From contig NIVC01000168.1 in NCBI GenBank assembly GCA_002269645.1, forward strand, positions 347,899 to 411,898: a stretch of 64,000 nt of DNA, in the 5' to 3' direction. How positions within the stretch are numbered: the stretch's first letter is position 1; every line of letters starts with the position of its first letter. The stretch comes from Macrostomum lignano (lineage: Eukaryota). The notes under the pieces are model-generated. The model searched no databases, was not told where the DNA came from, and worked only from the letters and a program-made list of their open reading frames with translations. Position numbers and translations under genes: made by a program. Shown here one piece after another: positions 1,452-47,783 of this stretch.

Positions 1452-2891
1452 TCACGGTTGACGATGCTTCTCATCAACCCACATTGCCGGGTTTTGCTGT
1501 TTATTAAAACGTATTGAATTTTTCATTTCCATCGATAACTTTTTATCCAAATTTTCAGTTGGTGGCTGCTTTGAATCGCGCGGCAATTTCGGCTGCCGCA
1601 AAGCGGCCTTGCTGGCTGCCAGAACCACAAAATCCAGCAGCATCTCGATTAGTTCGAATAGCGTCAGTACGCTCAGTCCGAGCCAGAGGCCAACCTGCAA
1701 TGGTTATTATAATCATATGAATTAATAATATCGGCGCTCTCCGCTCCCTCTCCGCTCCCTCTCCGCTCCCTCTCCGCTCCCTCTCCGCTCCCTCTCCGCT
1801 CCCTCTCCGCTCCCTCTCCGCTCCCTCTCCGCTCCCTCTCCGCTCCCTCTCCGCTCCCTCTCCGCTCCCTCTCCGCTCCCTCTCCGCTCCCTCTCCGCTC
1901 CCTCTCCGCTCCCTCTCCGCTCCCTCTCCGCTCCCTCTCCGCTCCCTCTCCGCTCCCTCTCCGCTCCCTCTCCGCTCCCTCTCCGCTCCCTCTCCGCTCC
2001 CTCTCCGCTCCCTCTCCGCTCCCTCTCCGCTCCCTCTCCGCTCCCTCTCCGCTCCCTCTCCGCTCCCTCTCCGCTCCCTCTCCGCTCCCTCTCCGCTCCC
2101 TCTCCGCTCCCTCTCCGCTCTCTCTCTCTCTCTTCACTCCGCTTCCGCTCCTCCGCCTCGGCGCCAAAATGAGTGCCTGCGCGGCGCCAAAATGAGCGCT
2201 GACAACACCGATTCCCAAAAATAATGTACATGCAGGAATTTATTCATGTACATGTAAAATTCTTTGCTTTGCCCCCCTCATCATAAAATCCATGGGGCTC
2301 AGAACTCGGGCGAATGTAGATTAAATCCACAGGTTGCATGCACTGTACAAACCTGACCGCCCATATCCGAAAGCAGATCAGTAATTTCGTAGCCTTTCGT
2401 TGAGATTTCTGTGCGCGTCTCCGGGTCGGCAAAGAACACAATCAGCTTGACCATGTTTTGCCTGCGAAGCAGAGCGGTACAGGGGTCGTTGACGTTTGAG
2501 ACTAATTACTCTTAACCGTCAGAGAATACGGCAATCTGATTATGCTACTCACGATATAAAATCCGCCTTAGAGTCATCCGTTTTGTGTCCGTCCATCTGA
2601 GTTCGGACTATTGGATTGTACATCATCACTTGGTGGAACGCGTCCGACTGAAAAAATTGTGTGTAGCTGTCATTATTTGCCTGTGTCTGTCTATCTTAGT
2701 GTCTGTCTGTCTTAGTGTCTGTCTGTCTTAGTGTCTGTCTGTCTTAGTGTCTGTCTGTCTTAGTGTCTGTCTGTCTTAGTGTCTGTCTGTCTTAGTGTTT
2801 GTCTGTCTTAGTGTCTGTCTGTCTTAGTGTTTGTCTGTCTTAGTGTCTGTCTGTCTTAGTGTTTGTCTGTCTTAGTGTCTGTCTGTCTTAG

Positions 2892-2928
<37 letters not shown>

Positions 2929-5900
2929 GTCTGTCTGTCTGTATATTTTAACAAGTCAAGAAGCCGCAGACCTCGTATCCCATGCTTGGCCAAGCCGCCA
3001 TCGATATAGATGCATCGTATTGCATTTCCCTGAAAAAAATATCAAAATTGTATGCATTCGAATAAGCTTCGCAACGAAAGGAGTCGAAAGTGTTAAGGGA
3101 TCGATAATAACTTTTTGCTCAAACTTACTCGCATTGACTCTGACAACCAGATCGGCAAGTTTCGAACTCAGATTCTTGAACAGCATGCAAGCATTCGGCT
3201 GAGAAAGTTGAAAGAATTACAATTTTTAGTACAGAATAGCTTTAAAAGTAGAAAATAGTATAAAATTCGTTTTTACAAACCTTCTTGACTGACACTTTTC
3301 GAAGTTGAATTGTAGCTGTACTTGCAAATGGGGAGCGCAGGAGTTCGAGTGATGTTCGACGGCGGCAGCTTTGGCGAGCTGCAGTTGCATCGCGACTCCG
3401 TTTTGCGTTGAATGCAAGTTTTTAGGCAGACCTGTGGAAGTTGTTCGAGGTTTGACAGCGATGTTGATTTGGGCGCGTTCGAGTAGTTTAATTTGGCTTA
3501 AAATGAATTAAAAAAGATTTTAAGTGGACCATTTAAACCTACTCGGTAAAACAAAACAAATGATTTTGTTTGATACGCCGGTAAAGCAAACTCGATATGT
3601 GTTTATATAAATAGCGTTTTTTGGAATTTTAACAACTACTTAGTAACAAAGCTTTGGTACGTCCCTCCAGAGCTTTTACTGGAAGGGGGCATGTCCCCCT
3701 TGGATCCACTTACAATATTTACAATCACTTTAAACCAAGGGTTGGCTAACTTTTTTAACTTAAGGGCCAGATTTAGAATCTACATCAGAGAGATGGGAGA
3801 TGGGAGATTGTAAAGAAGAGAGGAGAGAGGAGTGGGTAGGGGAGAGGAGAAAAAAGAAGAGTGCTGAGAAGAGACGCCTTGGGCTTGGCGGATTGCTATT
3901 GTGAAGTTTTAAAGGACCCAAGTACCCAAGGACCCAAGTACCCAAGTACCCAAGTACCCAAGGACCCAAGTACCCAAGGACCCAAGTACCCAAGGACCCA
4001 AGTACCCAAGGACCCAAGTACCCAAGGACCCAAGTACCCAAGGACCCAAGTACCCAAGGACCCAAGGATAGAGAGGTTTCACGGGGACGCATGATTAAGC
4101 GCGCATTTTTTAACTGCTCTCAGTGACACAAGCGCGCATCTTGAATGCATGAGTCTGGCACAAGCGCGCATTCTAGACGCATCAATCTGAATGCTGCAGC
4201 TTGAAGTTAGAAGCCGGACTACAGCTGCAGCGGGCATTGTACTACCAGCGGCAGCCAGCGACAGACCATCAAAACCCGGCCTCAGACTTGCATAACATGT
4301 GGTTCTATTCTTAGATACTGAACATTTTACCATTTGAAATCGGAGCATTTTACCATTTGAAATCGGAGCATTTTACCATTTGAAATCGGAACATTTTACC
4401 ATTTGAAATCGGAGCATTTTACCATTTGAAATCGGAACATTTTACCATTTTAAATCGGAACATTTTACCATTTTTAATCTGAACATCTTATTTACCATTT
4501 TTAATCTGAACATTTTACCATTTTTAATCTGAACATTTTACCATTTTAAATCGGAACATTTTACCATTTTAAATCGGAACATTTTACCATTTTAAATCGG
4601 AACATTTTACCATTTTAAATCGGAACATTTTACCATTTTTAATCTGAACATTTTACCATTTTAAATCGGAACATCTTACCATTTTTAATCTGAACATTTT
4701 ACCATTTTTAATCTGAACATTTTACCATTTTTAATCTGAACATTTTACCATTTTAAATCGGAACATTTTACCATTTGAAATCGGAGCATTTTACCATTTT
4801 AAATCGGAACATTTTACCATTTGAAATCGGAGCATTTTACCATTTTAAATCGGAAAATTTTACCATTTGAAATCGGAACATTTTACCATTTGAAATCGGA
4901 ACATTTTAACATTTTAGATCGGAACATTTTACCATTTAAAATCGGAGCATTTTACCATTTTAAATCGGAACATCTTACCATTTTTAATCTGAACATTTTA
5001 CCATTTTTAATCTGAACATTTTACCATTTTAAATCGGAACATTTTACCATTTTTAATCTGAAAATTTTACCATTATTAATCTGAACATTTTACCATTTTT
5101 AATCTGAAAATTTTACCATTATTAATCTGAACATTTTACCATTTTAAATCGGAACATTTAAACTTTGTGAAAAATAAATATAGAGAAAATAAACCTTCGT
5201 GACTTTCTGTCGGATAGTCGTAAAAATGGACTGCGCGCTTATTTCCACACTTGCCAAAAAATACACATGCGCGCTTACGTCACGCGCTTTTTTTCAGCCC
5301 TCCCGTTTCACGGCCTCCTCCCTCCCGCATGTGGCCAGCGAGCCGAAGTTTGCCGATCCCGGCTTTAAACCATGCCACTCAAGCGCACCCTTTATTTGCA
5401 CGAGTAAGAGGCTTGGGCGCTGCGGCAAAAAAGTGACAAACTGCATAGCAACCCATCCATTTTCCGCTAACTCCGTGAGCATCCATGTACAAGCGTACAT
5501 GTACATGGATACACGTACGAGCAGTGTAAACTTATGCTCCTTTCACAATTTCAATTGCGCTTACCATTTTCGTATAGTTCACTTTAGGCAGAGCCCATTC
5601 ATCCAATGATCTGTACATGTTGTACTTTTTGTTGGCAGTTTTGTAGTCAATGGCGCAGTTGTCAGAGTACGGGCTGCCTAGTAGCTTTTTGTAGGTCTGA
5701 AAATTTAAGGAAATGTTTTATGTTGGATATATTTCTTTTGAGCAGAAATAGTAATAATTAATTATTGATTACACCTAGCTATTGCGCTGTTCAGTCCAAG
5801 GACTAAGGGGGGGGGGGGAGGGTCACCAAACACACCCTCAATTACCCCAGCTGATGCTGGCACCCATTTTACAGCTGAGTGAACTGAAGCAATGCAGAGT

Positions 5901-8900
5901 GTCTTGCTCAAGGACACAAAATCACCTGTTTCATCCCAATGTAGGTCTCCCGTCCAGGTGACACGCGAATGCCGGACTCCTCAGGAAACGGTTGCGTTGT
6001 TGGCTCGTGCAGCACCACGACTGCTCCAGCTGACTGCGCCACTGTGCTCACGTAATCCGACTGATCGATGTACAGCGTCAGGGTTAGTCCAAACAGGGGA
6101 CCCTGCTGTTTCACTGACACTCTGCTTGAGTTGGTGACAGCCGCATTGAAGGTGTAACAGTTGCCGTACATCGGGTGTAGAAAGCGGGTGAAGTTTCTAT
6201 AAAAAGGATTGAAATTGATCAGGTACATGTAAATATACTTTATAAGCGATGGCCAACTACCAAGTAGCAAGAAACAAATGTGAAGTAAATCCTGTACAAG
6301 TATGTGTCCCATTAAGGTTTTGAATCTCAATTTTCGACTCGAATAGTGGCGCACCTAGACCTAAAGCCCCTGGTGCTAAATCCTCTGGTGCTAAAGCCCC
6401 AGGTGCTTAAGACCCTGGTGCTAAAGCCCTGGTGCTAAAGCCCCTGGTGCTAAAGCCCTTGGTGCTAAAGCCCCTGGTGCTAAAGCCCTTGGTTCTCAAG
6501 AAGGAGTCCTAAAGAATTGATAAATCTATTAAAGTCGTTTTACTTCTGATTAAATCCCAATCCTTCCTATTCAATAAAGACAGAAAATCGTCAATGAAAT
6601 CTTTCTTGTACATTTTTAAATTATTTTGCTCAAGTGTTACTTATGCACAAAATTGTTGTAAGAAATCCTACAAAGCCTAAGTCGCATCTAGCTCATTCGA
6701 GAACACTTACGACACACTGCAGTAGCTGGTGCCCATACTGCAGTCAACCAGCATGTCACTAATCTGATAGCCAATCTCTGTCTTCACATCGTCGTCCAAC
6801 GTGTTATAGAAGTCTAGGAACATGTACGTCATGCGGACACTGTCCGGGACAGTCTTGGAATCCATTGTGCTCAGGTTTCGAGTAGTACCTGAGCTGTACA
6901 TCGAACTTGTAAGGCCGGAGTACTGCAAAGTGATCGTTGTACTGACTAACTGACTGACTGACTGACTGACTGACTGACTGACTGACTGACTGACTGACTG
7001 ACTGACTGACTGACTGACTGACTGACTGACTGACTGACTGACTGACTGACTAACTGACTGACTGACTGACTGACTTGAGTAACTGACTGACTGACTGACT
7101 GACTGACTGACTGACTGACTGACTGACTGACTGACTGACTGACTGACTGACTGACTGACTGACTGACTGACTGACTGACTGACTGACTGACTGACTGACT
7201 GACTGACTGACTGACTGACTGACTGACTGACAGTCTCTATTCATTAACAGTAGAACTACCAAGGGGGGGGGAAATTTCCCAGAAAATTCCCCCCCCCCTG
7301 ACAATTTTTTTTGCTGCGCCGGAACGGAGCAACGCAGACACACAAAATTCAAGAACACGGGCTAACTTTTTGTTGCGCACCTTCTCAAACAAGAATCAAG
7401 TCGCCAGCCCTCCGGACCGTCGAGATATTCGACGATTCTGCCAGAAGGTCGGATTTTTCCCATAAGCGCTAGTGTATTCAGTACACCCCTGTGCGCCAAT
7501 CAGCACTGCGCCTCAGCGCAGCCTTGCAATGCCTCCAAATTGCATCAGCACGTCGACCACATGTGTCTGCATCAGCTCTGACTTCGTTGGTCACTAGCCT
7601 TCACCCAGGCGGAGCTTCTAGACCTTCAACAGGTGGCACCAAGTGACTATGGACACTCTGATACGAATTTCTCGAGTTTCGCTGATCAAGCCTCGACAGT
7701 GGGCATACCTCAACTGCTAGGTATCCTCAGCTAGTCTCTCGAGCCTTCCATCATCACCCCGACGCCGTCGGCACCTTCAACGGATTGCACCAGGTGACTA
7801 TGAACACCCTGATGCAAATTTCTCTAGTTTCGCTGATCAAGCCTTGCCAATGGGCAAGCCTCAACCGCGGAACATCTTCAGCTAGTCTCTCAAGCATTCA
7901 GTCATCACCCCGACGCCGTCGGCACCTTCAACAGATGACACCAGGCGACTATGAACACCCTGATGCAAATTTCTCTAGTTTCGCTGATCAAGCCTTGCCA
8001 ATGGGCAAGCCTCAACCGCGGAACATCTTCAGCTAGTCTCTCAAGCATTCAGTCATCACCCCGACGCCGTCGGCACCTTCAACAGATGACACCAGGCGAC
8101 TATGAACACCCTGATGCAAATTTCTCTAGTTTCGCTGATCAAGCCTTGCCAATGGGCAAGCCTCAACCGCGGAACATCTTCAGCTAGTCTCTCAAGCATT
8201 CAGTCATCACCCCGACGCCGTCGGCACCTTCAACAGATGACACCAGGCGACTATGAACACCCTGATGCAAATTTCTCTAGTTTCGCTGATCAAGCCTTGC
8301 CAATGGGCAAGCCTCAACCGCGGAACATCTTCAGCTAGTCTCTCAAGCATTCAGTCATCACCCCGACGCCGTCGGCTCCTTCAACAGATTACAATAGGTG
8401 ACTATGAACATCCTATTGCAAATATGTCAGGTTTTTCTGATCAAGCTTCAATATTGGGCAAAGTCGGTTTTTTCATTTTTTAATGATTCAGAAATGTTAA
8501 GAGCATGATGAAAAATCACGCTCACGTGTCATTACTCCCCTGGTGCCACCGGTTGAAGGTGCCGACGGCGTCGGGGTGCTGGCTGAATGCTTGACTGACT
8601 AGCTGAGGATGTCCAGCAGTTGAGGTTTGCCCAATATTGAAGCTTGATCAGAAAAACCTGACATATTTGCAATAGGATGTTCATAGTCACCTATTGTAAT
8701 CTGTTGAAGGAGCCGACGGCGTCGGGGTGATGACTGAATGCTTGAGAGACTAGCTGAAGATGTTCCGCGGTTGAGGCTTGCCCATTGGCAAGGCTTGATC
8801 AGCGAAACTAGAGAAATTTGCATCAGGGTGTTCATAGTCGCCTGGTGTCATCTGTTGAAGGTGCCGACGGCGTCGGGGTGATGACTGAATGCTTGAGAGA

Positions 8901-11900
8901 CTAGCTGAAGATGTTCCGCGGTTGAGGCTTGCCCATTGGCAAGGCTTGATCAGCGAAACTAGAGAAATTTGCATCAGGGTGTTCATAGTCGCCTGGTGTC
9001 ATCTGTTGAAGGTGCCGACGGCGTCGGGTGATGACTGAATGCTTGAGAGACTAGCTGAAGATGTTCCGCGGTTGAGGCTTGCCCATTGGCAAGGCTTGAT
9101 CAGCGAAACTAGAGAAATTTGCATCAGGGTGTTCATAGTCACCTGGTGCAATCCGTTGAAGGTGCCGACGGCGTCGGGGTGATGATGGAAGGCTCGAGAG
9201 ACTAGCTGAGGATACCTAGCAGTTGAGGTATGCCCACTGTCGAGGCTTGATCAGCGAAACTCGAGAAATTCGTATCAGAGTGTCCATAGTCACTTGGTGC
9301 CACCTGTTGAAGGTCTAGAAGCTCCGCCTGGGTGAAGGCTAGTGACCAACGAAGTCAGAGCTGATGCAGACACATGTGGTCGACGTGCTGATGCAATTTG
9401 GAGGCATTGCAAGGCTGCGCTGAGGCGCAGTGCTGATTGGCGCACAGGGGTGTACTGAATACACTAGCGCTTATGGGAAAAATCCGACCTTCTGGCAGAA
9501 TCGTCGAATATCTCGACGGTCCGGAGGGCTGGCGACTTGATTCTTGTTTGAGAAGGTGCGCAACAAAAAGTTAGCCCGTGTTCTTGAATTTTGTGTGTCT
9601 GCGTTGCTCCGTTCCGGCGCAGCAAAAAAAATTGTCAGGGGGGGGGGGTAAATTTCCCCCCCCCTTGGTAGTTCGACGGGCGGAAAAATGGCTTGGTATT
9701 CCTACTGTTAAGCAGCAGGCAATAACTCACAGAATCCTCCTCATCTTTGTAACCAGAACCAGCGCTACGTTTTTTTCGCTTGGAAGCTAAAATAATGTTT
9801 TTCTTTGATAAAAAATAGCCATCTTCAGGTGAATAAAAACTGCTATTCACGATTGAGTTTATTACTCAAACAAAACATTTCTGCGACTCACGTGCAGGTG
9901 TCGAATTCGCAGCAATAATCGTACTGGAATTCATTGTCGATGTGGGAGTACTTGAAGTGACATTGCTATAACCCGCGGGACTCATCGTTGTAGTCGAAGT
10001 GGAATTCGCGGTAGCATTCGAAGTTTCAGTCGTACTCGTGCTCGTGCCTGTTGTTGGTGTATGCGGTGACAAATTCGCTTATATGATTGGTAATGCTGGA
10101 TGATGCGCACAAAGGACTACTGGGAGTTACCGTTGCATCATGGCACTAGACGCGATAGAAGACCTGCATTTCCAAGCACTTAATTACTTTCTATCTCTTG
10201 AATGTACGAGCTACGACAGATTTTTTCTAAAACCGACAGCTCAGCTGCAGCTATTGCGTGGCGCACCTGAAGGCTGCGTACGGCTGTTCAGTCCAAGGAC
10301 TGAGGGGGGGGGTCGCCACACACACCCTCAATTACCCCAGCTAATGCTGGCACCCATTTTACAGCTGGGTGAACTGAAGCAATGCAGAGTTAAGTGTCTT
10401 GCCCAAGGACGCAAATTGTTCCAGTGGGATCTGGAATCGAACCCCCGACCTTTCAGTCGGGGTTCACTAGGCTACAACCCCGTTCTGGTAAGACACAGAG
10501 CACTGTCACTTTTTTTCCGTTTCCTGAAGTTGAAGTAAAAAGAATGAATTAAAAAAAACTTGTTGGTACGACCAACAGTCGAACAAATGTCAGATTCATA
10601 CTGGAAGCCCTAAGCCATCGTTTTAACTGTAACTTATAGTAGTCCTTGATGCTCAGTTGAAAAAAAAACACAAAAAGCTCACTAGTAGCCGATTGCACTT
10701 TGCTTTTTCTAGCCGGGCTCTGGTTGCAGACTGTTACGGCCGGGAACTCTCTGGGCAAGTTGATCTCCGCGCCCCGAGCCACTGCGATGGGGTAGCTGTA
10801 GTATTTGTCCACTATGGACTTGATTTGCACCACTGTCAGGCCTGTGTAATGGTGCGGCATGTTGGGCGAGAGATCTGTGAGTACTAGTAACGCAGCTCTT
10901 CGACCGTGGAAGACAGTGGAATAAGGTCAAAGGGGGGAGATAAACAGAGAGGAAGACAACGAAAGAAGAGTAAAGAACAGAAGATTAACGAATGGAAGAA
11001 AATCAAAGCGCTGAAGAAGATTAAAGAGCGGAAGAAGATCAAAGAGCGGAAGAAGATCAAAGAGCGGAAGAAGATCAAAGAGCGGAAGAAGATCAAAGAG
11101 CGGAAGAAGATCAAAGAGCGGAAGAAGATCAAAGAGCGGAAGAAAATCAAATAGCGGAAGAAAATCAAAGAGCGGAAGAAGATAACAGAACGGAAGGAAA
11201 CCAAAGACGAACAACAACAACAACAAAGTACGCAGCCCCGCATGCAAGGTCACAGTTAGAGCAGGGTGCGTCAGATGGCGCGCCGCAGAGCCTGAGAGCG
11301 GACGAAGTCCACCCCGTTGGCGGTGTCGGGCGCCCCGGCGTCGCCTAGGAGGCAGTCCACGTATCGACGGGTTTGGGCCTGACCCCGCCTGAACGGGCCC
11401 TGAAAGCTGAGCAGCAGAACGTCCTGAACAGGTTGGGGGCAGTAGCCCTCGGCCCGGATCACGTGGCCCGCCAGTTGAAGTCACCGCCGGCGCAGGATGA
11501 TGGACGGGTACTGCAGCTTGGCCCGATCGTACAGGGCCTCGGTCCCGACGCTCTCGTCAGCTCGAAAGGCTGCATTGAGCAGCCCTGGGTGGGCTGAGTC
11601 CAGCTGCGGCTCCAGCGGGTCAGACAGGCCGTCCGCCCTCACCACAGCAGCTCGAGTATCGCAATACAGCGCCATGACAGCGTCGATTAGCTGCTTGGGG
11701 TACCCGGTAGGCTCGAAGGACAAAGGGAAGCGCGGCTTTCAACACCGAGTCAAACCCCCTTAGAAATTCAACGAAGACAATGATCAGCGTAGACTGGCGG
11801 ATGCGCTCGATGAAACGGCGGAGTGCGAGGATCTGGGCCGCGTTGCGGCCGGAATCCGTTCTGCTCGTACCACAGGTACGGGTCCAGCACCTACTGCAGA

Positions 11901-12570
11901 CGATCGAGCAGCATCCGGTTGAAGAGCTTCGCGACGCAGGACACAGTGAGATCCCGCGGTGGTCTTCTTTCGGCGTTGTCCCTGCTTTCTTCGGGATCGG
12001 CACGATGTGCGCTACGGTCCAGTCGGTGGGCGCAGGGGCGCCGGTGAGCACGCGGTTCATGACCTGTGACCTGGGAGGCCACACAGCGATCGAGCCGCAG
12101 CGCTTCGACCGGAATTTCGTCGGGGCCGAGCGCCTTGCCGCCTGATGTTTTCCGAGCAAACAGCACAAAGTCCTCCGTGGTGACTGGGCTGGTGCAGAAG
12201 TCCTCTTCAGCTGGGAGCGGCGTGTAGGGAGCACATAAGGAGCACAAACTCCGTAGTGCGCTCCGTCAAAGAACGGAAGGAGACCAAAGAGCGAAAGGAG
12301 ACCAAAGAACAGAAGGAGACCAAAGAGCGGAAGATCAAAGAGCGGACGGAGATCAAGGTAATAATCCAAAAAATACTTACACAACCCAGCTAGAAGCAAT
12401 AGCGTCCATAGAAACTTCTTTGCAACACTACTGCTCCTAGTGATATTCGGTATGCCGTGCATGCCGATGTTGGAGCCCCAGCTAGAGGCCAATTCGAGGA
12501 ACGAGTTGCCAGTCTTGGCATCGGGTTCCTTGTGCTCCTCATCCGTTGGAGTTTTCTTTTCAGTTGTCAT
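1452..12570 (-). CDS. DEG/ENaC (amiloride-sensitive sodium channel family) subunit, paralog 1; 13 exons, ~643 aa
   Basis: Exons (minus): 12570-12381, 10841-10683, 10077-9892, 9786-9731, 6922-6711, 6196-5926, 5696-5565, 3431-3281, 3198-3129, 3029-2972, 2647-2553, 2461-2353, 1694-1452. Sum 1932 nt, phases compatible. Family motifs: pre-TM1 GMHGIPNI, FPAVTVCN, HPMYGNCYTFN, QPFPEESG, thumb CLKTCIQ..CNC, WPS, LLSDMGGQVGLWLGLSVLT (TM2, G-x-S filter). Exon 10077-9892 has a weak AAG acceptor and is the least certain. Confidence 0.93.
1737..2120. repeat. 11-bp minisatellite (CTCCGCTCCCT)n
   Basis: ~35 near-perfect copies in the last intron of paralog 1. Confidence 0.95.
2690..2942. repeat. 18-bp GTGTCTGTCTGTCTTA-type array grading into (GTCT)n
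   Basis: Read directly. Confidence 0.9.
3915..4066. repeat. GGACCCAAGTACCCAA minisatellite inside the hAT element
   Basis: Read directly. Confidence 0.9.
4315..5160. repeat. 23-bp satellite AACATTTTACCATTTTAAATCGG inside the hAT element
   Basis: ~36 copies with variant blocks. Confidence 0.95.
5778..5918 (-). mobile_element. Headless SINE family 1 copy abutting a splice donor
   Basis: Body matches the other copies. The tRNA head is missing, and similarity starts ~5 nt into the intron after the donor at 5925. Confidence 0.7.
6362..6495. repeat. 15-bp AAAGCCCCTGGTGCT array
   Basis: Read directly. Confidence 0.85.
6943..7231. repeat. (ACTG)n microsatellite
   Basis: Read directly. Confidence 0.95.
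7248..9707. mobile_element. Non-autonomous foldback DNA transposon (2460 bp) with TTAA target-site duplication and tandem 151-bp repeats inside both inverted arms
   Basis: TTAA at 7244-7247 and 9708-9711; termini CAGTAG...CTACTG. Left arm 7248-8462 is the near-perfect reverse complement of right arm 8626-9707. The arms differ by one 151-bp unit (4 vs 3 full copies), a 28-bp terminal deletion and small indels. Confidence 0.85.
10230..10481 (-). mobile_element. tRNA-derived SINE family 1 with a CORE-like central domain
   Basis: Minus strand reads GGGGTTGTAGCCTAG...GGGGTTCGATTCC (A/B boxes), then CCTTGGGCAAGACACTTAACTCTGCATTGCTTCAGTTCACCCAGCTGTAAAATGGG, resembling the MIR CORE. Four copies in the window. 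Confidence 0.8.
10985..11200. repeat. 18-bp GAAGAAGATCAAAGAGCG minisatellite, resuming at ~12270-12355
   Basis: Read directly; interrupted by the LINE fragment. Confidence 0.9.
11208..12268 (-). mobile_element. Degenerate non-LTR retrotransposon RT fragment (RTE-like) with (TTG)n tail
   Basis: Frameshifted RT motifs KALGPDEIPVEALR, WTVAHIVPIPKK, HRGISL, KLFNRMLLDRLQ, FVEFLRGFDSV. Microsatellite tail at ~11208-11225. Confidence 0.8.
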
Positions 12571-12640
12571 TGTATTAGGGAGAAAATTCGAGCAATAGTC
12601 AAAGCGGTTCTGTAGCCGAGTAAGCGGGATCGGGGGGCGG

Positions 12641-12646: not shown

Positions 12647-13529
12647 ATACCCTCATCAAACTGTCTATTGTTGTGTTAGCCAAAATGCAACGTTACCATA
12701 GCAACTAGACTTATAAGCACCAAATTTGGGGTTAATTTAGTTAAGCAGCAAATTTACTGAAGTAGATATAACAGCATCCTCTAATATTGAATGGTCGCTA
12801 AAACTCTACATAGCTATAATACTAGTTTGACCTCAGCTCTACCCAGAGATTAGTTGTCTTCTAATTAAGTGAGGAATCAGTTAGTTTTGGTCGCCAGCCA
12901 GCTGACTGGGCGCTTCTCTATTTACTCATTTGTTACGATTCTATAGATGCACTCGAGATTTCATAGTTATGGTAGCTATGGACAAACGACTTGCTAATTA
13001 AATTATCGTTCTAGTTGCAGTACCAGTTTGAATGGTGAAAAATTCCATTCAATACAATACAACAAAAGACCCAAAATTGTCATGAAGAACTGGTTTGGTT
13101 TTATTAATTAGTAACTTGCTACTCGTTAATGTATTGTTACAACACTCAGAATGACAGGCAACCCATTCATCTAATTATAGTGCTCCTGCATGGCTCCCAG
13201 TTTCCATCGATGTCGAATCGATCTAGTGTACCGGTCCCGCTTATTCAATACCAGCAGCTGAAAGCCTTGAGTTAGAAATCTGACTTTGACTACTTAGAGT
13301 AGGCTACTGATTTTCGAGAGTATAAAGCCTATTTTTTCTAAAATACAACTCAGCCGGGAAGGTGACCGACGTGTCGACGCATTCGATGAACCCGAGGTCA
13401 ATGGAATACTGTGTCGGTGCTCTTATCAATACAGAATTCTATGGCTAAAAGTACATGCATCAAACCTTAACCGTAACTTTTGGACACATGTTACAATTTT
13501 ACATATCACTTATTTCTTTCAAAGGGCCC

Positions 13530-13830
13530 TGCTTGGACTCAACCGCAGGGACATCAGGGCGGTGAACATGGCACTCTCGCGTCATGGCTGTTTTGCCAGG
13601 CATCGCCACCTCCAGGGAAAAATCCGCAGTGAGGAATGCCCCTTCTGCCTCTCCGGTGTCGAGAACGCGGAGCACTTCATCTGTGAATGCCCCGCTTTTA
13701 CTCAGGACAGGCTCACCTAGCTCGGCCCAAACCCGGACCTCTCCGACGTTTTCAGGCTCGAGAATCTCTGCCAGCTCGTCCGCTACCTAAGGGCTACCGG
13801 GCGAGCGACAATCCACCTCCTTATTCTACG
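13530..13830 (+). mobile_element. 3' fragment of an R1/Loa-like LINE ORF2 (CCHC zinc knuckle)
   Basis: My translation: LNRRDIRAVNMALSRHG...ECPFCLSGVENAEHFICECPAF, with an in-frame stop downstream. Confidence 0.7.
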
Positions 13831-14744: not shown

Positions 14745-21981
<7,237 letters not shown>

Positions 21982-22050
21982 ATTAAAAAGGTGTAATTTT
22001 TATCCAGATTTCTAACTTACTCTGGCGGTTTGTAGTTCGTCTCCAAATGC

Positions 22051-39636: not shown

Positions 39637-42600
39637 ATGCGCACTTCAGCCAATCGCCAGCCCGCAAGCATGAGCGAAGGTGACAAAACAAATCTGGTGA
39701 ACCAGACCGACGAAGGCACCGATCCGAACAACGCCGCAGGCGCTGCCGCTATCGGCGCTGATGAGCCGTCGTCAGCAGACAAGACGGCCAGCTCGTCTCC
39801 ATTGCAACGAAAATTGCGCTGCCCCCCGCCGCGCGGCATGACACTAATCGTATTAGTCTCTGTGATATTCAGCGCCGCAGTGACCTTGGCTCTCATTCTG
39901 ACCATAATTTTCGGCGAGCCGCAAGTTCAACGACTTGGCGCGGTGGCCGCCGACACAACCGAAGCGGGAAAATGCGGCCTTGAGATGCTCACCAACGGTG
40001 GTAGCGCTGTTGATGCAGCTGTTGCCGCCGCTTTATGCAATGCCGTTATACAATATCCAATCACTGGTCTGGGCGGCGGAGGCCTCATGCTGGTGCACAG
40101 TCATCGGGCGGACAAGACTACTCTGTTTGATTTCTTAGAAACTGCGCCAGCCACCGTCACCGCGAAATCGTTTGCAGCGGCTGGCGGCGAGTCCAGAGCG
40201 TTGAAATCTGCGCTTGGCGCTGGCGTGCCCGGCTTTGCGCGCGGTTTAGAGGTGGCGCATAAGTGAGTTTTTTGTTGTTACTATGCCGTTGCTATGTGGG
40301 TTTTATGGTATTTCGCCACTTGCTATGCTGTTTCTATGTCAATATTTCGTTGCTATGGTGTTTCTAGTCTGGTTGCTATGGTTTTTCTAGTCTGGTTGCT
40401 ATGGTGTTTCTAGTCTGGTTGCTATGGTGTTTCTAGTCTGGTTGCTATGGTGTTTCTAGTCTGGTTGCTATGGTGTTTCTAGTCTGGTTGCTATGGTGTT
40501 TCTAGTCTGGTTGCTATGGTGTTTCTAGTCTGGTTGCTATGGTGTTTCTAGTCTGGTTGCTATGGTGTTTCTAGTCTGGTTGCTATGGTGTTTCTAGTCT
40601 GGTTGCTATGGTGTTTCTAGTCTGGTTGCTATGGTGTTTCTAGTCTGGTTGCTATGGTGTTTCTAGTCTGGTTGCTATGGTGTTTCTAGTCTGGTTGCTA
40701 TGTTGTTTCTAGTCTGGTTGCTAAGCCGCTCGTCTGTCAACGCCGTATTTATCAGCCCTCTTCTTTCCCCCATCAAGGCGGTTCGGCCGGCTGAAATGGT
40801 CCAGCCTATTTGCTCCGGCGATTCGCCTGGCAACAAGCGGCTTTCACATGCCGGCCGATGTTCACCTATTAGTGGCGAACAATGCGGCCCGTTTAGCCGG
40901 CAATCCTTTGTTAAAGCGCGTGTACCTGACACCTAGCGGAGCTCCCAAGCCAACTGGCACTCTGATCACCATGCCTGAGCTTGCTGGCGCTTTGAAATTT
41001 CTACGGGACCAAGGCGCCAATGCAATGTACAGCGGCAGCCTGTCCGCCCAGCTGCTGTCCACTTCGTCTGACAATGGCGGCTTTCTGGCCCAGGCGGATC
41101 TGACCGGCTACAAAGTGCAGGAGCGAACCGCTCTGGTTGGGCACTACCGCAATTTTACCATTAGAACTTTTCCTCCGCCTTCTTCTGGCGGCGCCTACAC
41201 TCTGCTGCTGGCCCAGGTGTTGGCCGGATATCCGGGTTAGTCCCCACCTTTGTTGACCTGTTAGCGAAATCAATATTTTGCTTTAGGGCGACAACAAATG
41301 ACTGCCTGCGGCGCTAAAATGAGTGCCTGCGGCGCTAAAATGAGTGCCTGTGGCGTTAAAATGAGTGCCTGTGGCGCCAAAATGAGTGCCTGCGGCGCTA
41401 AAATGAGTGCCTGCGGCGTTAAAATGAGTGCCTGTGGCGCCAAAATGAGTGCCTGCGGCGCTAAAATGAGTGCCTCTGGCGCTAAAATGAGTGCCTGTGG
41501 CGCTAAAATAAGTCTCTGTGGCGCTAAAATGAGTGCCTGCGGCGCTAAAATGAGTGCCTGCGGCGCCAAAATGAGTGCCTGTGGCGCTAAAATGAGTGGC
41601 TGCGGCGCTAAAATGAGTGTCTGCGGCGCTAAAATGAGTGCCTGTGGCGCTAAAATGAGTGCCTGCGGCGCTAAAATGAGTGCCTGCGGCGTCAAAATGA
41701 GTGCCTGCGCCGCCAAAATAATCGCCCTGATTCTGAAAATAATAAACTCTTGGCTTTGCCCCCCCCCTTTACCATAGAATCCATGGCGACTCCCCCCGTG
41801 AGGAGAGACAAACCTTGAGAGGGCCAGATTGCTATTGTAAAGTTACAAAGGACCCGAGGGCTATCGAATACCTCCCCCCCTCATCACCCTTACTTCCAGC
41901 ATCCAGCAACGACTTGTCCAATTCCACCGGCCTTCTGCTCCATCGGTTCGCCGAAGCTGCCAAATTCGCCCTCGGCGCTGTACAATCCATCGGCGAGTCC
42001 TCTACCGCCCTCGCCGCCGACCTGTCGACGCCCGCTTACGCCGACCGACTTCGAAGTCGAATTGCCGACAATCGCGTATTCAACGCCGACAATTCGACTG
42101 CCTACGCCGAGCAGCCGTGGCCTCAGCCGAATCGCCCGCTGCAGGCCAGCTCTAGCCTGGTTGCCGTTGACAACGACGAACTATACGTATCCATGGAGAC
42201 GAGTATTAACACGCCGTTCGCCGCCGGTTTGACCACCTCGCCTAATGGCATCTTGCTTAACAATGCGCTGGCTAATTTCGATCTGTCCGGCGGCTCCGCT
42301 GGTAACTATAGCAACGCACCGGCCGGTGGCAGACGGCCTGCCACGCTAATGTCGCCATCGTTCGCCTTCAATCCGCGTCAACGATGCGGCCTGAGATTCG
42401 CCTTTGGCGCCTCAAATAGCACCGCTGTGCCCAGCGTTACCGCTTGGTTGGCTGCCAGGTTAGGGGCCTTCAGATTCTTTAATAATCCTCTTTATACCCC
42501 TTTATGAGCATCGTACTTAAAGTTCTCCTTCCCGAGAATCCTACTCAAGATCCCCTACCTGAAAATCCTACTCAAGATCCTCTCCCTGATAATCCTACTC

Positions 42601-44666
42601 AAGATCCCCTCCCTGATAATCCTACTCAAGATCCCCTCCCTGATAATCCTACTCAAGATCCTCTCCCTGATAATCCTACTCAAGATTCCCTCCCTGATAA
42701 TCCTACTCAAGATCCCCTCCCTGATAATCCTACTCAAGATCCCCTCCCTGATAATCCTACTCAAGATTCCCTACCTGATAATCCTACTCAAGATCCCCTC
42801 CCTGATAATCCTACTCAAGATTCCCTACCTGATAATCCTACTCAAGATTCCCTACCTGATAATCCTACTCAAGATCCCCTACCTGATAATCCTACTCAAG
42901 ATTCCCTCCCTGATAATCCTACTCAAGATTCCCTACCTGATAATCCTACTCAAGATTCCCTACCTGATAATCCTACTCAAGATCCCCTACCTGATAATCC
43001 TACTCAAGATCCTCTCCCTGATAATCCTACTCAAGATCCCCTCCCTGATAATCCTACTCAAGATCCCCTCCCTGATAATCCTACTCAAGATTCCCTACCT
43101 GATAATCCTACTCAAGATCCCCTCCCTGAAAATCCTACTCAAGATCCCCTCCCTGATAATCCTACTCAAGATCCCCTCCCTGATAATCCTACTCAAGATC
43201 CCCTCCCTGATAATCCTACTCAAGATCCCCTACCTGATAATCCTACTCAAGATCCTCTCCCTGATAATCCTACTCAAGATCCCCTCCCTGATAATCCTAC
43301 TCAAGATCCCCTCCCTGACAATCCTACTCAAGATTCCCTACCTGATAATCCTACTCAAGATCCCCTACCTGATAATCCTACTCAAAGATCCCCTCCCTGA
43401 GAATCCTACTTAAGATCCCCTCCCTGATAATCCTACTCAAGATTCCCTACCTGATAATCCTACTCAAGATCCCCTCCCTGATAATCCTACTCAAGATCCC
43501 CTCCCTGATAATCCTACTCAAGATCCCCTCCCTGATAATCCTACTCAAGATCCCCTCCCTGATAATCCTACTCAAGATTCCCTACCTGATAATCCTACTC
43601 AAGATCCCCTCCCTGAAAATCCTACTCAAGATCCCCTCCCTGATAATCCTACTCAAGATCCCCTCCCTGATAATCCTACTCAAGATCCCCTCCCTGATAA
43701 TCCTTCTCAAGATTCCCTACCTGATAATCCTACTCAAGATCCCCTACCTGATAATCCTACTCAAGATCCTCTCCCTGATAATCCTACTCAAGATTCCCTA
43801 CCTGATAATCCTACTCAAGATCCCCTCCCTGATAATCCTACTCAAAGATCCACTACCTGAAAATCCTACTCAAGATCCCCTCCCTGATAATCCTACTCAA
43901 GATCCCCTCCCTGATAATCCTACTCAAGATCCTCTCTCTGATAATCCTACTCAAAGACCCACTACCCGATAATCCTACTCAAAGATCCCCTCCCTGAGAA
44001 TCCTGCTCAAAGATCCCCTCCCTGAGAATCCTACTTAAGATCCCTACCTGAGAATCCTGCTCAAAGATCCCCTCCCTGAGAATCCTACTTAAGATCCCTC
44101 CCTGATAATCCTACTCAAAGATCCCCTACTCAAGATCCCCTTCCGGATAATCCTACTCAAGATCCTCTCTCTAAGAATCCTACTAAAATTTCCCTCCGTG
44201 ATAATCCTACTCGCCTCCTTGACAATCGCTCTCTATCTTCTGAAAACGCAACAGTTCTCTGAACCTTACGTAGCGCAGCCTTTTCCTTGTCTATAAAAAA
44301 AGTGCTAATCCCCTTTCACACAGACTGTCGGACCTCTCCGCCGACACCAGCGTGTGCCCGCACGTTGTGAGTAGTCGTCGAAAGGACTCGAAACGACAGC
44401 CCTGCCTGCCTTTGGCATCGACCGACAAAGCGCCCAGAGTGAATCCGCTGCTGCCGCCCGACCATCCGGTGCTGGAATCCGAGAGCCGCTTACCAGCCGA
44501 TATTGGCAAGATGCTCACCGCTATGGGGCATAAATTAGTTGTGCAGCCGAACGGACTGGCTCGAGCCCAACTAGTTGCCATGGACATGTACAGCTTGGCT
44601 GCTGATAGCGACCTCCCTCGATCTGGTGCCGTAGCTGCTCTCCTGCCGCAGAGTGGCAGCTCCTAA
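39637..44666 (+). CDS. GGT7: Gamma-glutamyltransferase 7-like type II membrane protein, probably catalytically impaired; 4 exons, ~661 aa
   Basis: Exons: 39637-40262, 40778-41235, 41900-42458, 44324-44666 (1986 nt). Signal anchor followed by IIFGEPQV..GAVAAD, GGSAVDAAVAAALC, GLGGGGLMLVH, GVPG, PPPSSGG, NGILLNN, GGRRPAT, RCGLRFAFGA. The N-terminal and C-terminal context resembles GGT7 more than GGT1. AATAAA near 44789. Confidence 0.88.
40345..40725. repeat. 23-bp ATGGTGTTTCTAGTCTGGTTGCT array (GGT intron 1)
   Basis: Read directly; same family as 60125-62050. Confidence 0.95.
41296..41717. repeat. 20-bp AAAATGAGTGCCTGCGGCGC array (GGT intron 2)
   Basis: ~21 copies; two copies of the same unit at 2161-2200. 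Confidence 0.93.
42530..44200. repeat. 27-bp CTACTCAAGATCCCCTCCCTGATAATC array (GGT intron 3)
   Basis: ~60 copies. Confidence 0.96.
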
Positions 44667-45200: not shown

Positions 45201-45789
45201 CGACAAGTATGACACGTCACCCCAGTGAACAAAGTAAATATAGAAAGAATAAACTTTTAAAATATCAATTGAAATTTTTTTCTAACAAATTTTGTCAGAT
45301 TTTTTGGCTTGATAATGAGTGACTTTTAACTAGCGAGATTTACAGTATGCAATTTGCTTTGAATTCATTATCTATTATTTCTTTAAAGTTTAAATTGCTT
45401 CGACTTTTTTGGTGGTTTGAATCTCCCATGTTTTTATTGTTGTGCCCTGTGCCTGGTATAATTGTTTGTTTAGAATTTTCTTCCTTTATTTCTATGGGTT
45501 GAACCCTAGTATATCTAGACATAATATTCACAGCTGAAATTTGAATGACACAGCACTTAATGGTCTAGGATTTATGATGAATACTGATAATAAATCTTCA
45601 ATGCTATTTTTCTATTGTATTTAAGTACTTTGTGTTATCTCTGGTTGTTGTTTGGTCTTCCGAAATAAATACAAAGTTAATCCATGACAGGACAAAATCT
45701 TTATTATATAATATATTATTTGTGTCACTATAAACATACTGGCTATATTGTATTTATTTAATAGCATTTTAATAGTAGAACTACAAAAG

Positions 45790-45990
45790 CAACGCTGGCA
45801 CAGGAAATTCAGGAACACGGGGCTGTATTTTTATTTGCGCACCTTCTAAACCAAAAATCAAGTCGAGATGTTTAACAATTCTGCCAGAAGGTCTGATTTT
45901 TCCCGTAAGCTCTATAGGTGTATTTAATACACTCCTTTGCGCTAATCAGCACCTCCTACCACACCTGTCTGCATCAGTTCTGACTTTCTT
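45790..45990 (+). mobile_element. Older, more diverged fragment of the same foldback family
   Basis: GAAATTCAGGAACACGGGG...TTGCGCACCTTC...AATCAAGTCG...TTCTGCCAGAAGGTC...TGTCTGCATCAGTTCTGACTT matches 7345-7590 with internal deletions. Confidence 0.7.
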
Positions 45991-46079
45991 GCAAAAGAAT
46001 TCTCGGTATTCCTACTGTGAAAGCACAACTTAGTTACATTGATGATATCACAACTTCCATATGATTCTTTACTACTGGC

Positions 46080-46315: not shown

Positions 46316-46575
46316 GAGGGGTTGTGGCCTAATAGTTAAAGCGTCGAACTCTCGAAAAGTAGGTCGGGGTGTGACTCTTGATCCCACTGGAACAATTTGT
46401 ATCCTTGAGCCAGACACTTAACTCTGCATTGCTTCAGTTAACCCAGCTGTAAAATGGGTGCCAGCATTAGCTGGGGTAATTGAGGGTGTGTGGCGACCCC
46501 CCAGTCCTTGGACTGAACAGCCGTACGCAGCTTTCAGATGCGCCACGCAATAGCTGCGGCTGAGCTATCGGTTTA
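46316..46575 (+). mobile_element. SINE family 1 copy (plus orientation)
   Basis: GGGGTTGTGGCCTAATAG...GACACTTAACTCTGCATTGCTTCAGTTAACCCAGCTGTAAAATGGGTGCCAGCATTAGCTGGGGTAATTGAGGG...; the head is degenerate. Confidence 0.8.
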
Positions 46576-47783
46576 GGGTCAGCGTAATCAATTATTACTA
46601 TATGATTAAGTGAGACAAATATTAATTGGACGGTATTATTATCGACGGTACTCATCGTTAAATTGGATGGTGGATCTATTACTTCACCTATTTTTTCTGT
46701 AAAAAAGTAAAATGGCAAAACGCAGGACAGTTCGACAAGATGATCGACTCGCAGTCATTCAGCTGTAAATTCTAAGAAATTGTTTACTTTAAACTTTTCA
46801 ATTTGGAATATTCGACTGCTGGCAGAGAAATAGTCTGTATGGTACCGCTTGTGTCGTGACTTGTAGTATAGTCTGTACCGCCAGAAATTTAAATTCTTTA
46901 GAAGCAAGGGAGGGCATTAGACCAACGACCGCTGTATTATAAAGACGTATAACTCAAACATTGTGTATTTTTCCGAGGTCAATTTCTTAGAAAAAAAGTA
47001 CACTGCGAAAATCACTTATTTCAATGCGTACTTATTGATGGCAATTGGACTGGGACAATATAGATTACCATTCTTTAATTTAACATCATTAGCTGAACTT
47101 TTTGATTTGTTCTTTCTTGAATATTGAATCAAGTTTTTGTGCTAGTGTTCTTGTGATGAAAAAAAAACTGTTTTTTCCTATCTTGGCAGTGTACTTTTTC
47201 CAAGATATTGGTTTCCAAAAAATCACGATCCTTGAGTTTAGCGTTCTGTTATACTACAGTGGTCCTTGGCTGATTATTAAAAAAAACAATTTTACTATGT
47301 TTTCATCGTATGCAATGCCAGTCAATATCTGACTGGCACTGGTGGCTCCCACAGTAGATTGCATAAAGGCGAAAGTCAAATTTCCCATATGAGACGTTAC
47401 ATTTTCTTTCTTTCGTAATCAAGTGCATCCAATGCTCGTGGTCGAGTTTTAGCAATGTATAGCTGTTCAGTTTAGTTATTAAGATGCTCTGTTTGCAGTT
47501 TGCACCAACAGAGACACATCCGGCAGTAAAAATTGTAAAGAGAAAAGACAAACAAAAACGACTGTCTGATTGACAATGCAAGATGTTAATCACCAGTTGT
47601 AGTATATTAAATAACACGGGTACTAAATCAAGTCCACTGACAATTCACCTGTTTCTAATTAAGTAGAGAATAAAACCGAAAATCCAGTATTTAGTTGTTT
47701 AACCTAAACCATTACACTATATTTTAGACTTTATTGTAGCTTCTTGTCAAGCCACTCCAAGGAGTAGCCACGTTCACAAAACT

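Follow-up and report, generated by a model that had tools for sequence, protein, structure and literature searches.

A TTAA-flanked foldback element with 151-bp tandem repeats in its inverted arms, probably a non-autonomous transposon, in an intron of Macrostomum lignano

Foldback elements and other repeat-bearing transposons

Satellite-bearing MITE-like elements, such as those of bivalves, are short and non-autonomous and contain a small internal array of ~150–170-bp units in variable copy number. The array in these hybrids of transposable element and satellite lies in one orientation between the ends, and many of them are related to Helitrons. Other elements carry tandem repeats in long inverted arms, including FB of Drosophila melanogaster and Galileo of D. 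buzzatii, with target-site duplications (TSDs) of 9 and 7 bp, respectively. As cited in the Tetris study (PMC4079207), FB and Galileo, the latter a member of the P superfamily, have kilobase inverted arms with internal tandem repeats that vary in number, and repeated origins have been proposed for the foldback form, through loss of the transposase and elongation of the terminal inverted repeats (TIRs). Tetris of D. virilis is non-coding, and its TIR comprises an outer flanking domain, tandem repeats, and an inner partial domain; the middle is short and non-coding, the number of units varies, and very few copies are structurally complete (PMC4079207). Its repeat unit measures ~220 bp, its TSDs are 8–10 bp long, it is assigned to Mutator, and the MITE DAIBAM shares only its ends with Tetris (PMC4079207).

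Here we describe an element with this kind of architecture in a 64,000-nt stretch of Macrostomum lignano DNA, which we refer to as the window. It resembles FB, Galileo, and Tetris in the structural traits listed above, and a 244-bp MITE in the window provides a parallel to DAIBAM. It differs from Tetris in its 151-bp unit, its TTAA target, its CA..TG ends, and the second, internal left terminus kept in its right arm; for Tetris, kilobase-scale satellite arrays outside the element have been demonstrated (PMC4079207). Autonomous partners are known for FB and Galileo, whereas none was found for the M. lignano element among the window open reading frames (ORFs) that were scanned. Galileo repeats carry transposase-binding sites, whereas similarity between the terminus and the repeat unit was not significant in the M. 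lignano element. Unlike the array of the bivalve-type elements, that of M. lignano lies within an inverted duplication. The TTAA duplication and, in the 244-bp copy, the short TIRs (~16 bp) are shared with piggyBac MITEs, but the papers searched do not describe arms of kilobase length with tandem repeats for piggyBac.

Inverted arms, tandem units and the host intron

With its TSDs, the element occupies window positions 7244–9711 (NIVC01000168.1:355,142–357,609, assembly Mlig_3_7) and has the form TTAA-CAGTAG...CTACTG-TTAA. An earlier note had described an element bounded by TTAA, with tandem units of 151 bp in its long inverted arms, and this description was borne out by the sequence, by alignment of the arms, and by TRF. 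The arms (1,215 and 1,082 nt) make up most of the 2,460 nt and enclose a short non-coding middle with 63 unique nt; together with arm repeats that vary in number and a TSD at the outer ends, these are the traits of the foldback structural class. Two gap-free blocks of the arms were compared, 7289–7910 with 9026–9647 (622 nt) and 8060–8462 with 8626–9028 (403 nt), and neither contained a mismatch, giving 0 substitutions in 1,025 nt. In the global alignment, the left arm has one additional 151-bp unit and the arms otherwise differ by one 1-bp indel, until they diverge at their outer ends (41 nt on the left, 60 nt on the right) through indels of 28 and 9 nt. The near identity claimed for the arms thus holds for the two blocks but not for the outer ends, and assembly polishing could account for part of the perfect match. 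Folding of the element as single-stranded DNA was predicted at –1524 kcal/mol, compared with ~–357 kcal/mol for shuffled sequences.

The flanking, non-repeated domain of the left arm (7248–7621, plus strand) runs from the terminus through G9, AAATTT, and C10 into ~330 nt of unique sequence and is identical from 7289 inward to 9315–9647. Its counterpart in the right arm, delimited from the sequence and the arm alignment, carries a composite right end (9315–9707, minus strand). Period-151 arrays were found by TRF at 7622–8446 (5.5 copies) and at 8552–9314 (5.1 copies), and the arrays as delimited below comprise 5.6 and 5.2 units. We parsed the left array (7622–8462, plus strand) into units A (7622), B' (7773), B (7924), B (8075), B (8226), and C, the last of which ends after 86 nt (8377–8462), and the right array (8526–9314, minus strand) into A (9314), B' (9163, 150 nt), B (9013), B (8862), a complete C (8711–8561), and a 35-nt A-like stub (8560–8526). 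The four plus one units previously counted on the left are therefore replaced by five full units and a partial C, and the three plus one on the right by four full units, a full diverged C, and the stub. The three B units of the left arm are 100% identical among themselves, and the arms differ by one such unit (three on the left versus two on the right). Every unit carries the palindrome CCGACG-C-CGTCGG, which has 10 matches within the element versus 0 expected by chance. The interval between positions 8462 and 8626 does measure 163 nt, as stated in the earlier note, but 100 nt of this loop (8526–8625) are a continuation of the right array and only the 63-nt, AT-rich middle domain (8463–8525), which has no other match in the window, is unique. 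The right array extends 100 nt deeper towards the middle than its left counterpart, which makes the centre asymmetric.

The host intron (6923–9730, minus strand) has GT at 9730–9729 and AG at 6924–6923 and belongs to an ASC/DEG-ENaC (sodium-channel) gene, with Pfam ASC found on the exons at 5911–6354 and 10552–10926. Its 2,808 nt are accounted for by the element with one TSD (2,464), a (TCAG)n tract (291), and a further 53 nt, and 19 nt separate the splice donor from the element. The exons on either side are 100% identical to UniProt A0A1I8HZ99, and the left and right flanks of the element are unrelated sequences that form the two halves of one GT..AG intron. A GGT exon in the window showed 99% identity to M. 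lignano proteins, and window positions 29640–54666 match a locus (L005) of GCA_002269645.1 at 100%.

The inverted duplication could have been created in the assembly, by a fold-back (missing-adapter) long-read chimera or by repeat collapse or polishing. Such an artefact would agree with the 100% identity of the arms, with an assembly that is PacBio-based and rich in repeats (PMC5730564), and with the homeologous contig NIVC01004215.1, which by extrapolation ends at about the expected position of the element; the homeologous loci that we compared reach to ~3.7 kb short of it. A chimera would also invert the flank, however, whereas the palindrome stops exactly at the TIR/TTAA boundaries, between two halves of one intron whose exons match a UniProt protein in full. 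The one-unit difference between the arms, their dissimilar outer 41 and 60 nt, and the position of the element well within an 840-kb contig also speak against an artefact, and the asymmetric centre with its 63 unique nt argues for inverted duplication rather than a read chimera. We consider an assembly origin highly improbable.

Termini, target site and other copies

The junctions read ...TATTCA TTAA CAGTAGAACTACCAAG ... CTTGGTATTCCTACTG TTAA GCAGCAGG..., with identical TSDs at 7244–7247 and 9708–9711. The left terminal motif CAGTAGAACTACCAAG, the terminus in its short form (7248–7263, plus strand), has its equivalent in TAGTAGAACTACAAAAG, with which the MITE begins on the left (45773–45789). 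The right terminal motif (9692–9707, minus strand) reads CAGTAGGAATACCAAG on the minus strand and CTTGGTATTCCTACTG on the plus strand, and the right end of the MITE (46004–46016) has GGTATTCCTACTG in common with it. The resulting TIRs of the foldback element are 16 bp long and imperfect. The left terminal motif is present a second time, inverted and internal (CCGTCGAACTACCAAGG, 9663–9679, minus strand); this copy has two mismatches to the left terminus and, in the arm alignment, sits 12 nt inside the true right end.

The MITE (45773–46016, plus strand) is flanked by TTAA and TGAA, lacks 151-bp units, and has, between its left and right ends, ~200 nt of flanking domain in which deletions have occurred. 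It is small and non-coding, with TIRs, a TSD, and ends common to the larger element, so that what had been taken for a single arm at 45790–45990 is in fact a complete two-ended element. This copy shows that the apparent native ends of the family are short (~16 bp) and that left and right are unlike; kilobase TIRs, as proposed earlier, are thus not supported as a family trait. The putative functional ends of the family are terminal motifs of ~16 bp, 5'-CAGTAGnAnTACCAAG, and the two copies show insertion at TTAA with duplication of the target. The MITE was found at the same site in the homeologous contig NIVC01000031.1 (L004), and the alignment of a further locus (L006) also spans the site, at the level of the alignment.

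The earlier report of a diverged single-arm copy near 50985–51510 proved correct: a solo arm fragment extends from 50990 to ~51540 (plus strand), its inner boundary having been fixed by comparison with paralogous lectin cassettes. It begins at poly-C without termini, adjoins a fragment of a non-LTR retrotransposon on the latter's 3' side, shows 87% identity to the left flanking domain over 50990–51323, and contains one A-type unit plus ~60 nt of C-like sequence. The fragment is near-identical in all three homeologous contigs. To judge from these contigs, the MITE and the solo arm are probably old and fixed, so the family may no longer be active. The window thus contains one foldback element, the only such copy seen, one MITE, and one solo arm. 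Only three predicted M. lignano proteins in UniProt contain arm- or unit-derived stretches (A0A1I8HVP0, A0A1I8J1H1, and A0A1I8G181), which places further members of the family at other sites in the genome; two UniProt ORFs show at least two related units, with ~2.5 in A0A1I8HVP0. Metagenome, prokaryote, and viral scans for the element returned nothing relevant.

The longest ORF of the element encodes 83 amino acids, with no transposase ORF, and none of the ten window ORFs scanned against Pfam contained a transposase domain, so that neither a DDE_Tnp_1_7 partner, as expected for piggyBac, nor a DDD transposase of the Sola3 type came to light among them. For Sola3, which Bao et al. 2009 defined, the papers searched gave no rule on TSD or termini. 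Given that no transposase was found, we make no superfamily assignment. The sequence 5'-CAGT is a classic Tc1-like terminus, and each TTAA contains TA. If the element were of Tc1/mariner or pogo type, its ends would be ACAGTAG...CTACTGT, its target duplication would be TA, and an element base next to the TA on either side would complete each TTAA; the predicted empty site TATTCATTAAGCAGC reads identically in the TA and TTAA models. The outer T on the left and the outer A on the right would then be host bases, yet all four outer flank bases of the two copies are compatible with TTAA over bare TA, an outcome with a chance of ~1% at the local base composition unless the transposase favours T-TA-A. 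On these two copies TTAA appears to fit better than TA as the target, and we regard a Tc1/mariner- or pogo-type origin as quite improbable. A TTAA TSD is a piggyBac trait, represented here by TTAA/TTAA and TTAA/TGAA in the two copies, but the usual piggyBac termini are 5'-CCY...RGG-3', and the CAGTAG...CTACTG ends do not conform, confirming a mismatch that had been pointed out previously. The Kolobok superfamily has a 4-bp, TTAA-specific TSD and termini 5'-RR...YY-3' (PMC9587614); the TTAA agrees with this description, but the CA...TG ends likewise fail it.

Formation of the arms and fate of the repeats

We propose that the element is probably a copy of a non-autonomous class II (cut-and-paste, TIR) transposon with foldback architecture, short ends of ~16 bp, insertion at TTAA, and a body formed by inverted duplication of one arm. 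That arm, a ~375-bp flanking domain followed by the 151-bp array, would have been inverted and duplicated. Given that an internal left terminus is separated by 12 nt from the true right end in the right arm, and that the MITE ends are short, the foldback seems to have arisen when part of an element with short TIRs was duplicated in inverted orientation. The alignment of the arms shows that the presumed duplication left both the asymmetric centre and the internal left-terminus copy beside the true right end. It may have occurred while the DNA was being replicated or a gap repaired, via template switching or a hairpin, or two inverted copies may have recombined. The arms would be very young, or their identity may be maintained by gene conversion within the element. 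Mobilised in trans by a hypothetical TTAA-specific transposase, the element would have landed in a small ASC/DEG-ENaC intron, 19 nt from the 5' splice site.

Several of the same observations could also be explained by a private rearrangement in place, in which a short-TIR, single-arm element inserted and most of its body was later inverted and duplicated on site, a one-off that never transposed and is no archetype of a family. The sole other two-ended copy is a short-TIR MITE, the inner left terminus is retained in the right arm but not at its end, the centre is asymmetric, and the absence of arm substitutions in a family 13% diverged fits a recent local event. The duplication ends within a few nucleotides of the terminal motifs, however, and both functional-looking ends and the TSD were kept; such precise limits, seen here in one copy, are also known in transposing foldback families (PMC4079207). 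A rearrangement in place is possible but less likely, and we favour a transposon copy with foldback architecture.

Growth of the array inside the arm, as suggested earlier, is supported by its larger size here than in the diverged solo arm. With no more than ~1.4 units in the solo arm, expansion of the identical B units probably took place in the foldback copy, and unequal exchange or slippage may have produced the three and two identical B units of the two arms. The family might in turn have given rise to a ~150-bp satellite and spread it through the genome. This expansion, the related units at other loci with at least two units per array (~2.5 in A0A1I8HVP0), the 13% of the assembly made up of tandem repeats, and the precedent of Tetris (PMC4079207) are consistent with such a role. 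No array was seen outside the context of the element, however, and within 64 kb the 151-mer is confined to family copies, the many other tandem repeats of the window (periods of 4–198 bp) being unrelated; the literature searched yielded nothing on a 150-bp satellite in M. lignano. We consider a satellite source unlikely. The earlier note had also suggested ~150-mers as a dominant tandem class in M. lignano; Wudarski 2017 provides only overall shares, with tandem repeats at 13.12% and DNA transposons at 3.05%. It is a rather improbable proposition that Macrostomum has, or once had, an active and undescribed TTAA-specific lineage with CAG...CTG ends, the foldback derivatives of which transpose, give birth to dispersed 151-bp repeats, and add to the unusually high tandem-repeat load of 13%.

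A transposon that breeds tandem repeats has precedents, and the element adds to a known type of foldback rather than being unprecedented. If real and part of a family, it would be a spiralian, TTAA-targeting addition to the repeat-breeding foldback elements, which so far come mainly from Drosophila and have TSDs of 7–10 bp. It would also capture early steps of array formation within a single copy, from one unit in an old arm to two or three identical units in a young arm. Given that M. lignano is a model for transgenesis with piggyBac (PMC8717057), the stability of vectors could depend on whether the worm has a TTAA-specific transposase of its own, with non-autonomous substrates. In addition, assembly breaks, deletions, and hairpin RNA are likely to concentrate at a perfect palindrome of 1 kb that lies so close (19 nt) to a splice donor.

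Ends, arms and repeat arrays of the foldback element

The foldback element lies at NIVC01000168.1:355,142-357,609 (window 7244-9711), with a left boundary at 7244 that reads ...TATTCA|TTAA|CAGTAGAACTACCAAG... and a right boundary at 9711 that reads ...CTTGGTATTCCTACTG|TTAA|GCAGCAGG.... A repeat search and mismatch count yielded two inverted blocks, one of 622 nt at 7289-7910/9026-9647 and one of 403 nt at 8060-8462/8626-9028, each with 0 mismatches. Arm identity is perfect from the poly-C tract (7289/9647) inward; when the left arm was aligned globally with the reverse-complemented right arm, the only differences in this region were a 1-bp indel and an additional 151-bp unit in the left arm. 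A 9-nt indel between the arms is located directly inside the terminal region. The 25-mer centred on the palindrome CCGACG-C-CGTCGG had 10 occurrences in the element and none in shuffled sequences, and the folding energy of single-stranded DNA was -1524 kcal/mol for the element compared with approximately -357 kcal/mol for the shuffles. The foldback structure is real and well past chance level.

TRF detected arrays of period 151 at 7622-8446 and 8552-9314. In register, the left array consists of unit A at 7622, B' at 7773, three B units (7924, 8075, and 8226) that are 100% identical to one another, and a diverged C unit that breaks off at 8462, having reached 86 nt. The right array comprises, from outer to inner, A, B' (150 nt), B, B, a full C unit (8711-8561), and a 35-nt A-like stub (8560-8526). 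The middle of the element, 8463-8525 (63 nt), has no second match within the window. An earlier note on this DNA had described a TTAA-flanked element whose long, near-identical inverted arms carry 151-bp tandem units containing the palindrome, and the boundaries, mismatch-free blocks, TRF arrays, and palindrome counts all bear out that description. Its 163-nt loop stands as the spacer between the innermost arm ends but, given that the right arm extends 100 nt further inward than the left, consists of 63 unique nt and 100 nt of the right array.

The left end of the element reads CAGTAG-AACTACCAAG-G9, and the right end, from outer to inner, reads CAGTAGGAATACCAAG, 12 nt, and then CCGTCGAACTACCAAGG-G9. 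Comparison of these sequences indicates that the right arm carries internally an almost complete copy of the left terminus and has at its own end a different terminus that is 28 nt longer. An arm made up of flanking domain (its outer, non-repeated part) and array is thus present in inverted duplication, around an asymmetric centre and with an inner copy of the left terminus. Nested insertion of one family copy in another was considered and rejected, with the inner junctions showing neither TTAA nor a complete terminus.

Host intron and homeologous contigs

The UniProt protein A0A1I8HZ99 (ASC/acid-sensing channel) aligned with 100% identity to exons on the minus strand between 12633 and 1455, and Pfam ASC matched the exons at 5911-6354 and 10552-10926. 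On the minus strand, the donor side shows the exon end ...GAGGAGGATTCT at 9731, followed by GTGAGTTATTGCCTGCTGC, TTAA, and the element; the acceptor side shows the element, TTAA-TGAATAGAGACTG, a 291-nt (TCAG)n tract, and ...CTTTGCAG|TACTCC at 6923/6922. The GT..AG host intron of 2,808 nt is accounted for by the element with one TSD (2,464), the microsatellite (291), and a remainder of 53, with the insertion 19 nt away from the 5' splice site. An inverted duplication made by a fold-back read chimera would not produce this context, given that the flanks are mutually unrelated and each make up one half of a single intron, which separates exons of the same protein.

The microsatellite (6941-7231, 291 nt, (ACTG)n or, on the opposite strand, (CAGT)n) ends 12 nt from the left TTAA, and its unit is the terminal tetranucleotide of the element, CAGT; its position beside the element may be a coincidence or an expansion derived from the element's end. 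The minus strand of the window carries two tandem ASC/DEG-ENaC paralogues (1455-12633 and 14748-21999), and UniProt A0A1I8I062 joins the upstream TBC (Rab-GAP) gene to the NH2-terminal exons of the second of these, a fusion that is likely to be a read-through or polycistronic precursor or a mis-annotation.

The locus occurs three times in Mlig_3_7, in copies that differ mainly by the lengths of their tandem arrays. Homeologous or allelic copies of the window lie on NIVC01000031.1 and NIVC01004215.1 (92-99% identical), and a third locus, NIVC01000168.1:377,538-402,564, is window 29640-54666 itself at 100% identity, which places the whole window at NIVC01000168.1:347,899-411,898. A GGT exon in the window matches M. 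lignano GGT proteins at 99% identity, and the cluster of that protein has three members on three GCA_002269645.1 contigs. Redundancy and hidden polyploidy are known for the DV1 line, and the triple presence of the locus fits both. Homeologous loci were retrieved through the neighbouring TBC gene with 10-kb flanks, and they cover the window down to approximately 13.4 kb, 3.7 kb from the element. By extrapolation, the site orthologous to the foldback would be at approximately 107.4-109.9 kb of NIVC01000031.1; that on NIVC01004215.1, extrapolated from locus L007, would be cut by the end of the contig (54,551) approximately 750 bp into the expected position of the foldback. The assembly may have broken here because of the palindrome or of adjacent microsatellites.

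Related copies and the duplicated target

A BLAST search of the window with the arm identified two further copies. One, at 45773-46016, is a complete 244-bp element (referred to here as the MITE) with left terminus TAGTAGAACTACAAAAG, right terminus GGTATTCCTACTG, and flanks of TTAA and TGAA; its interior is approximately 200 nt of the flanking domain, with deletions. The ends of the MITE indicate that the native ends of the family are short (~16 bp) and that the difference between left and right ends is a family trait and not damage confined to the foldback copy. The other, at 50990-~51540, is a solo arm with 87% identity that begins exactly at the poly-C tract, has no terminus, and adjoins a non-LTR retrotransposon fragment at the 3' end of the latter (RNase H match 49778-50317). 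The earlier note had placed single-arm copies at 45790-45990 and 50985-51510: the former is in fact the two-ended MITE, and the latter corresponds to the solo arm, diverged and with fewer units as described.

The solo arm contains only one A-type unit and approximately 60 nt of C-like sequence, and the B units of the foldback are identical and unequal in number between its arms. Expansion of B is therefore specific to the foldback copy, and the earlier proposal that the array had enlarged inside the arm agrees with these unequal counts and with the 1.4 units of the older solo arm.

In locus L004 on NIVC01000031.1, base-by-base reading showed the MITE at the corresponding site, which the alignment of locus L006 on NIVC01004215.1 also covers. 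All three homeologous contigs carry the solo arm with an unchanged structure, and both copies are therefore old and fixed. Paralogous lectin cassettes were tried as the uninserted counterpart of the solo-arm site, but their upstream sequences differ and provided no clean empty site. These cassettes form a minus-strand tandem cluster at 47100-63700 of at least four, each with two F5/8-type-C (F-type lectin-like) domains (Pfam PF22633/PF00754), and the NCBI annotation of the loci examined calls no gene among them.

Other repeats in the window include non-LTR retrotransposon fragments (RT, RNase H, and C-terminal zinc-finger) at 11623-12300, 13298-13717, and 49778-50930, one of them within the region of the ASC gene. 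The protein (P0035) encoded on a 2.7-kb JGI metagenome contig is 81% identical to the C-terminal part, and a metagenome thus contains flatworm-like DNA. A repeat of approximately 210 bp, probably a SINE, occurs four times at 86-92% identity (10230-10460, 20985-21189, 46361-46574, and 5786-5920) and contains CAGTCCAAGGACTGAGGGGGGGGG and a tRNA-like stretch; tRNA (ARAGORN) and Rfam scans of the window made no calls, at this repeat or elsewhere.

Short terminal motifs are common to the foldback and the MITE, and TTAA is duplicated. The predicted empty site, TATTCATTAAGCAGC, is identical under TTAA and TA models. Under the TA model, the element would be Tc1-like with ends ACAGT...ACTGT, and the outer T and A would be host bases; these outer bases fit TTAA at 4/4 positions in the two two-ended copies, an agreement that chance would give in approximately 1% of cases if the enzyme has no preference for T-TA-A. 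From these two copies only, TTAA appears favoured over TA as the duplicated target. Within the element there is no transposase ORF, and no transposase was detected among the ten window ORFs, covering part of the window, that were scanned against Pfam. The ends of piggyBac are normally CCY...RGG; the CAG termini of the element depart from this pattern, as the earlier note had recognized. They also depart from Kolobok, which combines TTAA with 5'-RR...YY-3' termini (PMC9587614).

Beyond the window, a 78-aa unit ORF had only two UniProt matches, both from M. lignano (A0A1I8HVP0, 78%, and A0A1I8J1H1, 52%), and arm ORFs matched one more M. lignano UniProt protein, low counts that are weak evidence of scarcity given that the same word-indexed protein search, run with an ASC exon, missed A0A1I8HZ99 despite 48 consecutive identical residues. 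A0A1I8HVP0 carries approximately 2.5 units, and A0A1I8G181 carries the flanking domain followed by a unit end. Arm or unit stretches in three M. lignano predicted proteins indicate that arms and short arrays are present at other loci. A 20-mer from the arm was not found in the prokaryote genomes or viral contigs scanned, and three loci obtained in a metagenome scan with a unit 23-mer matched only over the 23-26-bp palindrome and were dismissed as chance.

Possible origin and comparison with known foldback elements

Divergence between the arms is zero; by comparison, the solo arm differs from them by 13%, and homeologous contigs differ from one another by 1-8%. Such identity would reflect either a very recent origin or ongoing gene conversion within the element that stops short of its outer 41 and 60 nt. 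Template switching, or a hairpin formed while DNA was replicated or a gap repaired, could have given rise to the foldback, as could recombination of inverted copies, and its arrays may have grown by unequal exchange or slippage. The copy is presumably non-autonomous and would be, or once have been, mobilised in trans by a TTAA-specific transposase. The foldback form may have transposed to this site or arisen in place, the latter seeming to us the less likely. The most plausible reading of the structure is a TTAA-flanked copy of a non-autonomous DNA transposon of foldback type, located in an ASC intron of M. lignano and with a 151-bp array expanding in its arms.

Units in Galileo add transposase-binding sites, according to work cited in PMC4079207. 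A similar role for the 151-bp units was considered and was not supported: the sole similarity between terminus and unit, CAGTAGGAATACC versus CAGTGGGCATACC (unit A), had p~0.007 in 1 of 18 tests and was not significant after correction.

Within the 64 kb, the 151-mer is confined to family copies, and the other tandem repeats detected by TRF (periods 4-198 bp) are unrelated to it. Minisatellite density in the window is extreme (63 TRF rows, periods mostly 11-46 bp, arrays up to 1.9 kb, such as 60130-62047 and 42530-44127), and many minisatellites are intronic or fall between exons of the genes described above. In Mlig_3_7, tandem repeats are reported to make up 13.12% and DNA transposons 3.05% (supplement of PMC5730564).

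Among described elements, Tetris of D. virilis (PMC4079207) is the closest analogue. Like the M. lignano element, Tetris is non-coding, with a short middle and very few complete copies, and its TIRs consist of a flanking domain, a tandem-repeat domain (~220-bp repeats, compared with 151-bp units here), and an inner domain. Both also have a related MITE, that of Tetris, DAIBAM, having only the ends in common with it. The TSDs of Tetris are 8-10 bp (Mutator-like), whereas the M. lignano element has TTAA, and Tetris repeats have been demonstrated as kb-scale satellite arrays elsewhere (PMC4079207). We found no description of a TTAA-flanked foldback element or of this M. lignano family in the literature searched, a search that covered papers and not Repbase or Dfam and does not prove absence. 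The foldback structure is viewed, in work cited in PMC4079207, as evolving independently in separate TE lineages, and the TTAA-flanked foldback of this flatworm would therefore be a fresh instance of a known architecture and not a novel architecture.
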